Part shown: one piece after another, positions 27,680 through 60,625 of the stretch
Numbering within the stretch: position 1 is the first letter of the stretch
How the letters are laid out: each line of letters starts with the position of its first letter
NCBI GenBank assembly: GCA_964270895.1
Contig: OZ185445.1
DNA length: 64,000 nt
DNA from: Podarcis filfolensis
Taxonomy: Eukaryota
Direction: 5' to 3' (one strand)
Notes under the pieces: generated by a model
The model's database searches: none
Told to the model about the DNA's origin: nothing
Seen by the model: only the letters and a program-made list of their open reading frames with translations
Position numbers and translations under genes: made by a program

Positions 27680-28175
27680 CAGTGGTACCTTGGTTCTCAA
27701 ACACCTTGATACTCAAACAACTTGGAACCCAAACACTGCAAACCCGGAAGTAAGTGTTCCAGTTTATGAACTTTTTTCCAGAAGCTGAACGTGCTCTGTT
27801 TTGATTATTCTTCCGTTTTGAGTGACACATCTGTCGGTTTTGAGTGCCACACTTCCATTTTGAGTGTTATGCTGAGGTCTGTCTGGTTTTGCTATTTATT
27901 TTGCGTTTTTGTTTTTGCTGCTTTTTTGTGACTGTGTGGAACCCAGTTCAGCTACTGATTGATTGTGTGGCTGCAGTACATTGTTCATTGCTTTCATTTT
28001 ATGCATCAGTGGTCTCGTTAGATAGTAAAATTCATGTTAAGTTGCTGTTTTAGGGGTTGTTTCTAAAAGTCTGGAATGGCTTAATCCATTTTGCATTACT
28101 TTCTATGGAAAAGCTTGCTTTGGTTTTGGAACGGACTTCTGGAACGGATTAAGTTTGAGAACCAAGGTACCACTG
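27680..28175. mobile_element. Tigger-like MITE (about 500 bp)
   Basis: TIR cagtggtaccttggttctcaaac / gtttgagaaccaaggtaccactg, TA on both sides. Confidence 0.9.
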
Positions 28176-29150: not shown

Positions 29151-29352
29151 CAGTGGTACCTTGGTTCTCAAACTTAATCTGTTCCGGGAGCCCATTTGAC
29201 TCCCGAAATGGTTTCAAAAACCAAGGCATGGCTTCCTTCACTCAATCGGAAGCCATATCGGACTTCATCTTCCGAAAAATGTTCGCAAACCGGAACACAA
29301 ACTTCTGGGTTTGCAGCATTTGGGAGCCAATTTGTTGGGGAGCCAAGCTGTA
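29151..29352. mobile_element. Tigger-like MITE with eroded right end
   Basis: Left TIR ta|cagtggtaccttggttctcaaac is identical to that of 27680. Confidence 0.7.
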
Positions 29353-30037
29353 TAGTTTCCTTGCAACTCCCTGGCCTGCTTTAGAATGGCTGCAGTTGTA
29401 CATGTATGCATGTTCACTTTTTGTGCCTATAATGTGATACATGCAAGACAAAGAAAGATATGGAAGAGAGTTGCATTTTTAAAAAATGTTTCTGGAATGA
29501 GTCGCAAGCTTGGGGGGTGTATTTGCGTGCTTCTCTCCTCCCAGCGAGATGCATACATTCCTGGCATGAAGGCGCTTCCTTCTGTGTGTGAAGTTGCCAC
29601 AAGTTGCCTTTTTTCTATATGTGAGCTGCTGCAGCAGGATGGCAAATTATAAGCAGATTAGAATGGCTATGGCAGCTTGAACTTTTGCTATGTGCAAGGA
29701 AGAGTATTAATATCACACAAGAGAAAAACAAATGCCTTCAAGATGAAATTTTTATGCTCCACATTGTCTCTTCTGAAGTCAGTTCAGGGAGCAGGGTCAT
29801 AAATAATGTTTGTTTTTCTTAATTATTGGGTAATGACAGCCAATACAATCCAAAACAGCTTAATGGCTTGCCTTGTGTCCAAAATGGAATTTTTAAAATC
29901 TGCTCTGTGTTCCGACTACTTTTGCTGCTTTTCTCTTCTCTCTGGTTGAATCTCAACCATTTTAAGCATTCTTGCGGTTGTTTTTCAATGCCTGTGCCAT
30001 GTTGGTAAATATGATTGCAAGAAAATGGCTTCATTTA

Positions 30038-31748
30038 CCGTATTTTTCGCACCATAGGACGCACTTTTTCCCTCCTAAAAAGCAAGTGAAAATGTGTGTG
30101 CGTCCTATGGAGCGAATGCAGGCTTTCACTGAAGCCTGGAAAGTGAGAGGGGTCGGTGCGCACCGACCCTTCTCGCTCTCAAGGCTTCAGAAAGCTATCC
30201 GCTAGCCGTGGGAGACCCAGCTCTCCCACGGCTAGCGGGGCGCTGCATTAATCCCGAAGCTTGGGGCGTGCGGAGCTCAGCGCGCCCCAAGCTTCTGGGT
30301 GCCGGCAAGGTCTCCGCTAGCCGTCTAGACCTTGCCGGCACCCAGAAGCTTGGGGCGCGCTGAGCTCCGCAGCCCCAAGCTTCGGGATTAGCGCTCCGCT
30401 AGCCGTGTCTAGGCTGCGGATAGCAGCCTGCTTCCCGGAGCGTCGGGCGCCCTGAAAGCAGAGCGCCCGGCGCTTAGGGAACACATCCGCAGCCTAGGCA
30501 ACCCTGCGGGAGGTCCCGCAGGGATGTCTAGGCTGCGGATAGCAGCCTGCTTCCCGGAGCGTCGGGCGCCCTGAAAGCAGAGCGCCCGGCGCTTCGGGAA
30601 CACATCCGCAGCCTAGGCAACCCTGCGGGAGGTCCCGCAGGGATGTCTAGGCTGCGGATAGCAGCCTGCTTCCCGGAGCGTCGGGCGCCCTGAAAGCAGA
30701 GCGCCCGGTGCTTCGGAAACACATCCGCAGCCTAGGCAACCCTGCGGGAGGTCCCGCAGGGATGTCTAGGCTGCGGATAGCAGCCTGCTTCCCGGAGCGT
30801 CGGGCGCCCTGAAAGCAGAGCGCCCGGCGCTTCGGGAACACATCCGCAGCCTAGGCAACCCTGCGGGAGGTCCCGCAGGGATGTCTAGGCTGCGGATAGC
30901 AGCCTGCTTCCTGGAGCGTCGGGCGCCCTGAAAGCAGAGCGCCCGGCGCTTCGGGAACACATCCGCAGGGTGGGGAGCCCTGCAGGAGTTCCCCGCAAGG
31001 CTCCCCACGCTGCGGATAGCAGCCTGCCGCCCGGCGGGCGGGGCGCCCTGAATCAGAGCGCCCCTCGCGCCGGGCAGACATCCGCAGGGTGGGGAGCCCT
31101 GCAGGAGTTCCCCGCAAGGCTCCCCAAGCTGCGGATAGCAGCCTGCCGCCCGGTGGGCGGGGCGCCCTGAATCAGAGCGCCCCTCGCGCCGGGCAGACAT
31201 CCGCAGGGTGGGGAGCCCTGCAGGAGTTCCCCGCAAGGCTCCCCAAGCTGCGGATAGCAGCCTGCCGCCTGGCGGGCGGGGCGCCCTGAATCAGAGCGCC
31301 CCTCGCGCCGGGCAGACATCCGCAGGGTGGGGAGCCCTGCAGGAGTTCCCCGCAAGGCTCCCCAAGCTGCGGATAGCAGCCTGCCGCCCGGCGGGCGGGG
31401 CGCCCTGAATCAGAGCGCCCCTCGCGCCGGGCAGACATCCGCAGGGTGGGGAGCCCTGCAGGAGTTCCCCGCAAGGCTCCCCAAGCTGCGGATAGCAGCC
31501 TGCCGCCCGGCGGGCGGGGCGCCCTGAATCAGAGCGCCCCGCGCGCCAGGCAGACATCAGCCAGCCCCACAAGCTCGGGGGACAGCAGGGAGGCGCAGCG
31601 CCACTATCCCGCTGTTCCTTGACCTGGTTCGGTTTCCCTGACCTGCTTTTGGGGGGGAAATAAAGGGAAAAATTTTTTCCTTTATTTCCCCCCAAAAAAA
31701 CTAGGTGCGCCCTATGGTCCGGTGCGTCCAATCGTGCGAAAAATACGG
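30038..31748. mobile_element. Tc2-like (MER104/Kanga-type TIR) non-autonomous DNA transposon carrying palindromes and a tandem array
   Basis: 27-bp TIR ccgtatttttcgcaccataggacgcac / gtgcgtccaatcgtgcgaaaaatacgg (2 mismatches); TA at 30036-30037 and 31749-31750; no transposase ORF. Confidence 0.88.
30407..31560. repeat. GC/CpG-rich 119-bp tandem array, about 9.7 units, two variants
   Basis: Type A units start at 30407, 30526, 30645, 30764 and 30883 (partial); type B at 30969, 31088, 31207, 31326 and 31445. The ORF track also repeats at a 119-nt period. Confidence 0.95.
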
Positions 31749-32089
31749 TATATATTTAATAAGTACTTCTTGAACTTGAATTCTAAATTTGCTACCAAGT
31801 GGAGTTTAGTGTTTGCCTGAAGAATTTATAAAGCAAAAAAGGAGATAGAACTATGTACTGCCTGTGAATTTACAGCTGGGTTTTCAAGTGAAGGATTTTC
31901 TCTACTTCACTTTTACAAAGTGGCATGAATATTTCATAGAATGTACTTGTAAGAGCAGTGGCTAGCTAAATTACAGTTATACCTATGCCAGTGAAATACC
32001 ATAACATTTAAATTTTAGGACTTCCAACTGTAATACCATTTTCTGCCAGAAAGGGTTTTAGTGGACTGTTCAAGTTCTAGGTCATGATG

Positions 32090-35795: not shown

Positions 35796-36037
35796 CAGTG
35801 GTACCTTGGTTCTCGAACGTAATCCATTCCAAAAGTCCATTTGACTTCCGAAACATTCAAAATCCAAGGTGCTGCTTCTGATTGGCGCCGGTGCCCAAGG
35901 AAACAATAGCCGACAGCCACATCGGATGTTTGGCTGCCAAAGAACATTTGGAAACCAGAACACTTACTTCTGGGTTTTTGGCATGTGGGAGCCAAAATGG
36001 TTCAAGCACCAAGGCGTTCAAGACCAAGGTTCCACTG
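35796..36037. mobile_element. Tigger-like MITE
   Basis: TIR cagtggtaccttgg / ccaaggttccactg. Confidence 0.8.
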
Positions 36038-43736: not shown

Positions 43737-44061
43737 TCTACCCCCATCGTTCAGCCTGGGCACTGAGGTCCAGCTCCAAGGGCCTTCTGGCAGTTCCCTC
43801 ACTGCAAGAAGTGAGGTTACAGGGAACCAGGCAGAGGGCCTTCTCAGTAGTGGTGCCCGCCCTGTGGAACACCCTCCCATCAGATGTCAAGGAAATAAAC
43901 AACTATCTGACTTTTAGAAGGCATCTGAAGGCAGCCCTGTTTAGGGAAGTTTTTAATGTTTAATGCTGCATTGTGTTTTTAACATTCTGTTGCGAGCCGC
44001 CCAGAGTAGCTAGGGAAACCCAGCCAGATGGACGGGGTATAAATAATAAATTATTATTATT
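43737..44061 (+). mobile_element. L2 LINE 3' fragment
   Basis: Homolog of 9320-9540 and 9801-9900; ends aataataaattattattat. Confidence 0.85.
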
Positions 44062-44258
44062 CTCTTCCTGCTACCAGAGACCCTCTTCACATGAGGTGCC
44101 ACAGAGAAAAATATATTTTATTCCACCACTACACTATGCGGCCCCACTCCACCACCCACCACAACGAAATGAGTTTGCTTTAGAACCCCTTTTATCATTT
44201 CTGTGTTTTTACCATTTATGCTGCATTATTTTTTTAAAAAAATCTTGCTTTTTTTTAG

Positions 44259-44991
44259 CTGCTGTAAAAGCCTTCAAAGATGCGAGACAGAAGCCAGCAG
44301 GACCCATTTCTTCAGAAGAGCATAAATCGGAAGAACAACTTACCAAACAATCTGAGCTAACCCAGCATTCCAGTAGCAGTCTACATAAGAAAACAATTAA
44401 ACAAGCTGGAAACCAAGACAAAATAAAGGTGAAAGAGAAGCCAGGCTCTGACATGGGAAAAGAACAAATTTGTGTGAGAGAGAAGCTGAAAATGGCAGAC
44501 GGTGAGGAAATACGCCTGTTGGATGATGTTACAGTGCAGGCTGCAGAGCATCATAAATTAGCTGCTCAGGCTCAAGCAGAAAAGTTAGTATATTCCGAAG
44601 TTACAAAATGTTTGGATGACCTCCTGAGTAGAACAGAAGTTGATTCACCTGATAGAGTGACAAGTGAGGAAGCTGGAATGGAGAAGGAATACTTTGATGA
44701 CAGCACTGAAGAAAGATTCTATAATCAGTCTTCTGGCTCTGATGAAAATGATAGCGATGATGACTTCTTCATTGGCAAAGTAAAGAGAACGAAGAAAAAG
44801 AAGGGAGCAGCTGATATTTCATTACCTACAGACCAGAAAGGCAAATGCATCCAGCTCAAAAAGGGCTTGCAGTCTGACACAGCCCAGGACACAGATGCAA
44901 AAGGCCAAAATCAAAGCTCAAAAACAATGAAGCTAGAATCCATGTTTTACTCTTCACTGTCAGAAACAAATAAGTCCAAATCAGTGAAAAG
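44259..44991 (+). CDS. SRFBP1: SRFBP1 coding exon 6 (large exon, start of the Bud22 domain)
   Basis: ttttttag acceptor, 733 nt in frame (AAVKAFKDARQK...EKEYFDDSTEERFY...SDDDFFIGKV...KLESMFYSSL), GTAAGC donor at 44992. Confidence 0.95.
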
Positions 44992-45151
44992 GTAAGCCAT
45001 CAAAACCCTCAATCTAGTTTGCAAACTTTTTGGACAAATGTTTTCACCCTTCAGGTGGCTTACATGCTGTGAAAAGGCTTTGCATATTTTCTGACTAGCC
45101 CCCTCTGTTGAGTCAATTTTTGCATTAGACTTTCCCTAGAGGAGCTGCCAT

Positions 45152-57604: not shown

Positions 57605-58893
57605 CTAAAATTGAAGTGTAGCAGGATAGTGAAGTGAAAGTCTTAACTTTCTTTTATATATATGTAAGTACAATGTTGACAAATGTCAAAAAGCTTCCCT
57701 AGATAATTAACATTTCTCAGTGATTCATAACACCTTACTGCCACCATTAGTTCCATCAAAATGATTGCTCTCCTGCTATATAAATAGAATGACCCTTATA
57801 GAAAAGGTCTAAATTCTAGCAAAATAATTTTGCCTTCCAAAACAAACAAGAGATCCAGCATTTTCCCATTCAAAAGCAAAGGAGCCATTTTCATGAAAGA
57901 CAAGGATATCAATGGCTGCTAGACACAATCACTGTATTCTTCCCCCCACTATATTCTCCCCCCAGTTGTTGCAAGTCACAAGGACAGGACCTCCTTGCGA
58001 GCTTCCCATTAGGGTAACTTGGTAAAACAGGGCTTAGGTTAGACTCTTTTCATGTCTCATTGTTATTTTGCTAGATTAAAAGGGAGGCTTGACTTTAGGA
58101 AACATATTTTTGTCCTGAAATGACAGCTCCCCTTAAGCCATGAACTCACAGCCCTTTGGGTCTACGTAATGTGTGCAGTTCAGTTCCTTTCCCTACCCTG
58201 AAATCATTCTGAGTGGTGCCTGGCTGCCCCTACGAAAAGTACAATGTTTTGCCACAGACTGTGTGTCACTTGGCAAGGGTTGCGTACTTGCTGCGGAAAG
58301 AAAGCTCATGGGTATACTGAGAGCTGGCAGCTATGCGCATTTTTTAAAAAATAGGATGCAGTCTTCATTTGCTGAGGAAAATACTTTGCAACAAGCACAA
58401 GTCTCAAAACAGTGGATGAAGCCGCAAGAATTCTAAAAGAATTCATAGTAGCAATCAGATGCTATAATACTTAAGAGACTCAGCTAGCCAGTTTGCAGAA
58501 AAGTTAGGAAAGCATTCCAGGACATAAATCTGTAGGGGCTCACAAGAAGGTAGTTGCCAGTTGCCTCTAAACTTAGTTGTACCTCTTGCAACCAATATAG
58601 GGATCAGAGCTGGAAGATATCTCAATGCATTGTCTGAAACTGGTTTGAAGTTCAGATTGCGATACCGGTTTCAACGTCATTATCCAAGAGATGGCATTTC
58701 TACATCTCTCTGTGAATACTGAATAAAAGACCTTAGTAAGAGCTTCTTGTCTTTCCATTACTGGCAGCCTGCCGTGAGGGAGGGGGAAACAGATTCCCTG
58801 AAGCCTATATGGTGCTGTTGTTTCAAGACTGATGTTTGAAATCCATCTATATTCTGACAGCAAGAGATGAAAAATGATCAGCGACTACCTTAC

Positions 58894-59050
58894 CTGCGTA
58901 TGTGCTGTACACGCATACCTTCTATAGTATCCGTAATCGCAGGACGTATCTTCAAGACAAAAGCTTGCTTTGTGTCCTTCAGCTACTCTCCTTTGGGAGC
59001 TTGCTTCAAGCAAGTCATAATGGCTGAATTCATCCATACTGTGGTAGTGT
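58894..59050 (-). CDS. LOX: LOX exon 4 ([14 protein letters not shown]...[28 protein letters not shown])
   Basis: 157 nt, AG/GT; copper-binding histidines and the LTQ Lys (GHK, codon 58969-58971). Confidence 0.97.
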
Positions 59051-59669
59051 CTGTTAAACCACAGGCAAACTTTTTTATTAAGTGTTAACCCAACAACCAT
59101 AATAAATAATAATAACAACAACAATAATAATAATAGTGGCACAGCAAAACAACGTTGGCATAGAGCCTTACAATCGCTGTTTATTATTCCAAAATAATGG
59201 GCTAATTTTGTTGCCCTATGATACTGTTCTTCATATAGCTCCATTATTCAACAATTATGTTACAAATACAGCTCTTGAGAGCAAATTGTTGCATAGCATT
59301 TAGTTTGTTTAAAGACTAAGCAAAATCATTGTTCCAAAATTTCCTGTTGCAAGAAGTAGGAAGCACCTAAGTGTCTATATCGGAGTGTCCAATTGTTACC
59401 CTTGAATACTGTTCATCTGAATTAAAAATGCTTACTTTGTATACTGTAAATTCCAAGGATACTATGGATTCTGATTCTTTTTCTATCAGTGGTCCCCAAG
59501 TATGTACGCAAAATATTTTGATATTTAAACTCCACTGTGTTAAATATGTTCTAGTTTTACACACATTGCCTTATTATGCTTCTGATTATTCATTGGTCAT
59601 TTTGTGAAAGGCCTGTTCTGTTGCTACATTATATTTCTCACAGTAGAGTAGCTGGAGGGGAAATAGATT

Positions 59670-60399: not shown

Positions 60400-60625
60400 C
60401 AGTGGAACCTTGGTTTTTTAACGTCTCGGAAGTCGAACATTTCAGTTTACAAATGCCGATAACCAGGAAGTAACTGCTTTGGTTTTCAACTGGGAAGTCG
60501 AATGGCTTCCGTTTTGAGTTTTCTGTAAGTAAATACTGCTGGAATTGCATGCTTTGGTTTTCGAACGTTTTGGAAGTCGAACGGTCTTCTGAAACGGATT
60601 ACGTTTGAAAACCGAGGTTCCACTG
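60400..60625. mobile_element. Tigger-like MITE in LOX intron 3
   Basis: TIR cagtggaaccttggtttt / aaaaccgaggttccactg, TA on both sides. Confidence 0.88.

Follow-up and report, generated by a model that had tools for sequence, protein, structure and literature searches.

A palindromic 119-bp repeat array in the lizard Podarcis filfolensis as the probable internal minisatellite of a MITE-like DNA transposon

A tandem array of GC-rich 119-bp units, with two hairpins per unit, is present in a 64,000-nt stretch of Podarcis filfolensis DNA (contig OZ185445.1), which is referred to below as the window. We interpret this array as the internal repeat core, that is, a minisatellite, of a 1.71-kb non-autonomous cut-and-paste DNA transposon of MITE-like type, which would extend from 30038 to 31748 and have 27-nt terminal inverted repeats and TA flanks. 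This explanation as a whole, a MITE-like transposon with an internal minisatellite of DNA palindromes, was given a probability of roughly 0.65. A previous account of the array, made from the letters alone (the sequence-only reading), did not include an enclosing element with terminal inverted repeats, nor a third variant of hairpin 1 that is located upstream of the array.

Tandem Repeats Finder detected a single tandem array at 30411-31544, with a period of 119, 9.5 copies, 95% matches and no indels, and every unit is direct on the plus strand. An exact 19-nt shared core was found ten times, only on the plus strand, whereas none was expected. The units start at 30413, 30532, 30651, 30770, 30889, 31009, 31128, 31247, 31366 and 31485, and the tenth of them is incomplete and decays past approximately 31557. 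The sequence-only reading had described two variants, A and B, that differ in sequence and keep the same two hairpins, and both the unit alignment and pairing far above chance bear this out. The A block (30413-30968, plus strand) contains five A-type hairpin-1 and four A-type hairpin-2 modules. The B block (30969-31557, plus strand) contains five B-type hairpin-2 and five B-type hairpin-1 modules, the last of which decays into the right flank. The sharp switch from A to B was located at exactly the position first proposed, 30968/30969, which is the end of a shared 10-nt core inside the fifth unit (30889-31008, plus strand). This unit is a hybrid in which an A-type hairpin 1 is followed by a B-type hairpin 2.

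Two details of the unit description had to be adjusted. Both types indeed have 119-bp units with common cores, but the hybrid unit is 120 bp long. Similarly, the shared middle block exists, but it is one nucleotide longer in A (24 nt) than in B (23 nt), and the position that had been written as a dot is AG versus T. B retains the length of 119 bp only through two opposite changes, as loop 1 has lost 1 nt and the loop of hairpin 2 has gained 1 nt. Within the A block, private differences amounted to 1.0% in hairpin 1 and 0% in hairpin 2, and within the B block to 0.5-1.0%. Each block is ~99% homogeneous internally and the junction lies within the shared core, which fits the suggestion that two separately amplified blocks were joined there.

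The array is flanked on the left by 373 bp and on the right by 204 bp of non-repeated sequence that bears the inverted repeats, and all ten cores are on the plus strand. The left terminal inverted repeat occupies 30038-30064 (27 nt, plus strand), and the right one, at 31722-31748 on the minus strand, is identical to it at 25 of 27 positions (two mismatches). The 27-nt terminal sequence had only two matches in the window, the two ends themselves, and zero were expected in shuffled sequences. The termini begin with CC and end with GG. In addition, a direct look-alike of the inner part of the right terminal repeat was found at 31705-31717. The dinucleotide TA could be read directly on both sides of the element, at 30036-30037 and 31749-31750, and is a putative target-site duplication; its support is weak, because it is just 2 bp long and lies in an AT-rich flank. 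The composition of the element is CpG-island-like, with a GC content of 0.67 and a CpG observed/expected ratio of 0.80, compared with 0.42 and 0.39 for the window. No transposase gene was found in the element, in which the only ORFs of at least 80 aa are TTG-start runs on the minus strand of the stop-poor, GC-rich array, and self-BLAST yielded no second copy of the element within the 64-kb window.

The array is continuous with its surroundings on both sides, as an A-type hairpin-2 arm is present at 30405-30412 and the B-type unit decays into the right flank. The right non-array part (31558-31721) holds a palindrome at 31646-31702, designated R1, and an inverted look-alike of the array core motif near 31601-31613. 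Such inverted look-alikes of the start of the core motif occur on either side of the array, at 30194-30202 and 31601-31613, both in parts of the element that are not repeated, and they may be what is left of the sequence that was first copied into the unit.

The outer stem of hairpin 1 is paired at 13 of 13 positions in A (two of them G-T) and at 10 of 13 in B, exactly as counted in the sequence-only reading. Hairpin 2 was also said to have changed between A and B. It did, but less than it appeared: when the units are in register, there are two true double-change pairs, and one more mismatch has become G-C. To measure pairing over the whole array, the fold of the A unit was applied to the alignment of all ten units, with partners slid by 1-3 columns as a control. 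With this fold, 92.4% of cells were paired, versus 33-47% with slid partners, and six pairs were altered on both sides, versus 0-2. Five of these six double-changed pairs distinguish the two types (alignment columns 21/68, 27/62, 32/57, 84/118 and 87/115). In the variable stems, 24 of 28 pairs were kept despite 20 changed columns (p about 3e-5). This value comes from a simulation that started from A and gave the variable stems independent changes, 9 on one side and 11 on the other; at least 24 of the 28 pairs were kept in only 3 of its 100,000 trials. The paired changes in the arms of A and B are far beyond chance. Individual units fold with z scores of -5.6 to -9.8.

The character of these changes is informative. 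All but one of the five robust double changes between A and B are of transversion type (U-A/G-C, A-U/C-G and, twice, C-G/G-C). Changes of this type cannot pass through a G-U intermediate, and therefore they fit copying from arm to arm. It should be noted, however, that the co-variation within the array represents few events, since all of it traces to one A/B split. The differences between A and B are also unevenly distributed: 21 of 43 variable-stem columns differ, versus 3 of 54 core columns (Fisher p = 8e-7).

More recent changes have a different appearance. Nine private substitutions were detected among the units (0.8% of cells), and every one of them is one-sided. Six are at a CpG, five substitutions are CpG transitions, and one of the nine converts a B-type mismatch to C-G. 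The CpG-type private changes are as in the normal decay of methylated vertebrate DNA. Eight of the nine fall within the 26 columns of the hairpin-1 variable stem (alignment columns 20-32 and 57-69; 30413-31557 in the window), which are also the columns in which A and B differ, and a C>T change in alignment column 24 occurred twice (30912 and 31270). The hairpin-1 variable stem looks over-hit even given its CpG content. This may reflect either a hot spot of mutation in the stem or protection of the cores, and we favor a hot spot. A hot spot is plausible because a mismatched stem, when extruded, would be a likely target of repair, and it is preferred because individual units of a single intergenic insertion would seem implausible targets of selection.

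Palindromes are not restricted to the array. The left non-array part consists of four successive palindromes and, folded as DNA, reaches -171.6 kcal/mol, versus -69 kcal/mol when shuffled (z = -24). The outermost (L1, 30046-30117) forms between the inner portion of the left terminal repeat and its inverted subterminal copy at 30098-30113, with 22 Watson-Crick pairs. The next (L2, 30121-30197) is 77 nt long and has 30 Watson-Crick pairs, three G-T pairs and two mismatches. It is followed by a 40-nt palindrome with a perfect 17-bp stem (L3, 30199-30238), whose bounding 10-nt motif is found again at 30314 and 30396, and by a 158-nt palindrome of 71 bp (L4, 30239-30396). Over the whole element, the module pairs include 243 Watson-Crick pairs. 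The palindromes of the left part are unrelated in sequence to most of the 119-bp unit. Some resemblance between hairpin 2 and L3 was seen by eye; it was not among the BLAST matches and is not claimed here.

The third, diverged version of hairpin 1 (C type) is located in L4, one copy per arm, at 30249-30306 on the minus strand and at 30334-30390 on the plus strand. Its similarity to hairpin 1 of the array, together with a few preceding bases, is about 69% over 55 nt, and 32 of 58 columns are invariant in a four-way alignment of hairpin 1. An 18-pair stem compared across the A, B and C types was paired in 88.7% of cases, versus 28-54% with slid partners, and five of its 18 pairs had changed on both sides, versus 0-2. 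Four of these five double changes in the three-variant comparison were again transversion-type. The presence of this version in both arms of L4, one per strand, shows that modules have been copied directly as well as invertedly, and its position outside the array means that the keeping of hairpins belongs to the DNA of the whole element. The interior of the element thus appears, from its sequence, to consist of diverged versions of a single palindromic module that was duplicated directly in the array and invertedly in L4.

Two readings of the unit had been put forward previously, either a structure-constrained ssDNA or RNA, or palindrome arms that are co-corrected by template switching. The co-variation that both set out to explain is confirmed, and the evidence favors template switching. 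The preferred folding strand is opposite in the two types: A folds with -90.6 kcal/mol on the plus strand versus -82.4 on the minus strand, and B with -81.7 versus -93.7. Among the mismatches of all modules, there were 10 G-T on the plus strand versus 5 A-C (which are G-T on the minus strand), a split with p = 0.30 to be read with the folding program's own preference for counting G-T; six further mismatches were of transversion type. Thus, one consistently better-folding strand with a wobble bias was not found, either in A and B units or in all modules taken together. A search of Rfam at the gathering score gave no match in the region of the element. A permissive Rfam scan (E up to 1, 29900-31900) gave 89 matches, which were sub-threshold, on both strands, and limited to generic hairpin models of the miRNA-precursor kind. 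No ribozyme family was among these 89 matches, in agreement with the previous statement that no hammerhead core is present on either strand. Constraint on a single-stranded RNA is not supported by these data, and the modules look like self-renewing DNA palindromes. No evidence of a host role was seen for this copy of the element.

Several observations nevertheless weigh against our interpretation as a MITE-like element with self-copying palindromes. The differences between A and B are concentrated in the stems, and the 26 stem columns noted above also hold eight of the nine private changes. Fixed cores next to stems that change in pairs would also be expected of a structure-constrained molecule, and template switching accounts for the pairing but not obviously for the fixed cores. 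The TA duplication is only 2 bp, and the window holds no second copy. One may therefore ask whether the unit is a structure-constrained single-stranded molecule, either an RNA, such as a hairpin precursor of small RNAs that the transposon gives rise to, or an ssDNA form that serves the element, in which selection keeps the hairpins and cores while the stem sequence drifts. Co-variation far above chance, invariant cores beside changing stems, and long stable stems (z = -5.6 to -9.8 per unit) would all suit such a molecule, and MITE-derived hairpin small RNAs are known in other organisms, which provides a general precedent. We nonetheless consider it quite unlikely, as A and B prefer opposite strands, wobble-type mismatches lack a strand bias, the double changes are mostly transversion-type, unrelated palindromes occupy the rest of the element, Rfam has no match, and the recent changes are mostly uncompensated CpG decay. 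Moreover, although pairs were kept through double changes, this occurred in two or three paralogous variants of one locus and hence involves very few independent events, and DNA palindromes give an equal signal. A related possibility, to which we assign a small chance, is that the palindromic modules are working parts of the transposon family, either as ssDNA or RNA hairpins that are needed for its spread or as sources of small RNAs, with the cores serving as recognition sites and the stems changing only in pairs. Cores with such a function would explain why both the old changes (A versus B) and the recent ones avoid them.

Other alternatives concern the history of the array or its assembly. 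The A and B blocks might come from two members or subfamilies of one transposon family and might have been fused at the shared core, either through recombination or through a jump from one copy to another as template during gap repair, in which case the paired differences would have been inherited from the family's pool of modules. The boundary that lies exactly in the shared core, the 120-bp hybrid unit, and the fact that the blocks are ~99% homogeneous yet differ at about half of the stem columns are consistent with such an origin. However, the flanks are already continuous with both types, with the A-type arm at 30405-30412 on one side and the decaying B unit on the other, and growth in place fits equally well. 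We regard the two-member origin as unlikely; it concerns history only and is compatible with our main explanation of how the arms came to match. Alternatively, the A/B junction or the number of units could be an artefact of assembly, such as a collapse or a chimera within the repeat, since near-identical, GC-rich, palindromic units of 119 bp are difficult to sequence and assemble. This is very improbable: the junction is clean, in register and within the shared core, the hybrid unit has the expected length (80+40 = 120 bp), private substitutions label single units on both sides, and the array of just 1.1 kb is well inside the length of long reads.

If the array is the minisatellite of a MITE-like element, its history might be as follows. 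The 119-bp unit consists of two palindromic modules between short shared cores, the cores being the two arms of a closing stem, and the modules would have multiplied by direct and inverted duplication. Complementarity of the arms would then have been kept at the DNA level by copying of one arm from the other, either through intrastrand template switching during replication or gap repair, or through the repair of hairpins that have been extruded. In this way, a change in one arm would be either lost or passed to the other arm. Later, neighboring units that had diverged into A and B may each have expanded to ~5 copies by slippage, unequal exchange or break repair, and because A and B expanded separately, a sharp boundary in the shared core would result. 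We infer this copying mechanism and the order of events from the pattern of the changes described above.

Elements of this general kind have been described previously. We read the lizard element as a tandem-repeat-carrying MITE-like transposon, probably with a TA target as in Tc1/mariner/pogo elements, and as such it would be of a kind that is already known. MITEs with tandem repeats, ordered unit variants and palindromes at the ends of the units have been documented (PMC3879986; review PMC9659126), and in the pearl element DTC84 the palindrome at the unit end was proposed as a driver, or hot spot, of length change (PMC3879986). Similar to the lizard element, the bivalve pearl elements, including DTC84, are short and non-autonomous and have a few central direct repeats between flanking modules that carry inverted repeats (PMC3879986). 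They also share with it a fixed order of unit variants, lower variability in some segments and a palindrome near the unit junction (PMC3879986). However, there is no sequence relation between them. In DTC84, the target sites are AA, the 156-bp units contain a palindrome of just 12 nt, and a microsatellite tail is present (PMC3879986), whereas the lizard element has TA flanks, units that are almost wholly made of two long hairpins, and unit types that are set apart by paired changes. In vertebrates, MITEs that carry or seed satellites include miDNA4, a Tc1-mariner element of Xenopus tropicalis, and Xmix/Xstir of Xenopus laevis (review PMC9659126). By their description, these resemble the lizard element in being vertebrate MITEs with a tandem repeat that was born inside the element and homogenised within arrays (PMC9659126). 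With regard to the paired changes, template switching in replication is known to make multi-base compensatory changes and perfect stems by reverse-complement copying, without selection on each intermediate (PMC8794818). Those hairpins were found in RNA genes compared across species, whereas here we are dealing with a DNA palindrome inside a transposon, for which the same mechanism would have to be assumed.

Several other classes of repeats were considered and rejected. A Helitron has no terminal inverted repeats, begins with 5'-TC, ends with 3'-CTRR, has a single 3' hairpin and inserts between A and T; the lizard element has 27-nt inverted termini of the form CC...GG. Foldback elements have long terminal inverted repeats composed of opposed subrepeats; here the units are direct and central and the terminal repeats are short. 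A hammerhead retrozyme or viroid-like repeat was rejected because no self-cleaving core was present in the units (permissive Rfam scan, 29900-31900). A coding array was also rejected, as the period is not divisible by 3 and the sole long ORFs are TTG-start runs on the minus strand. A search with the exact 19-nt core in public collections, which did not contain lizard DNA, gave 69 metagenome-contig, 4 genome-contig and 2 viral-contig matches. We attribute these to chance, since they are single matches in bacterial or viral contigs with similarity over no more than 37 nt, and they contributed nothing to the analysis of co-variation.

The array offers a small and clean example of how paired, apparently compensatory changes can come about in the palindromes of selfish DNA, although such changes are usually taken to prove that an RNA fold is functional. 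It thereby suggests caution for RNA discovery based on co-variation in repeat-rich vertebrate genomes. Many CpG-island-like copies of 1.7 kb could matter for methylation or replication, an effect that was not seen here. If the cores should prove to be protected family-wide, this transposon family would merit closer study.

Some other features of the window were detected in the course of this analysis. The longest ORF, at 43973-44995 on the plus strand, encodes 340 aa with a GTG start under the bacterial code and has no Pfam match. A weak Rfam tRNA match was observed at 2726-2784 on the plus strand (31.1 bits, gathering score 29), which could be the head of a tRNA-derived SINE instead of a gene. 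An ORF piece at 58885-59244 on the minus strand matched the Pfam family Lysyl_oxidase (E = 1.8e-22), and this exon match places LOX on the minus strand; the palindromic element is located ~19 kb beyond the 3' end of this gene. A second, unrelated small element was found at 27680-28175. It has perfect 23-nt inverted termini that start with CAGTGG (27680-27702 and 28153-28175), and single termini of its family were present at 29151-29173, 35796-35818 and 60603-60625.
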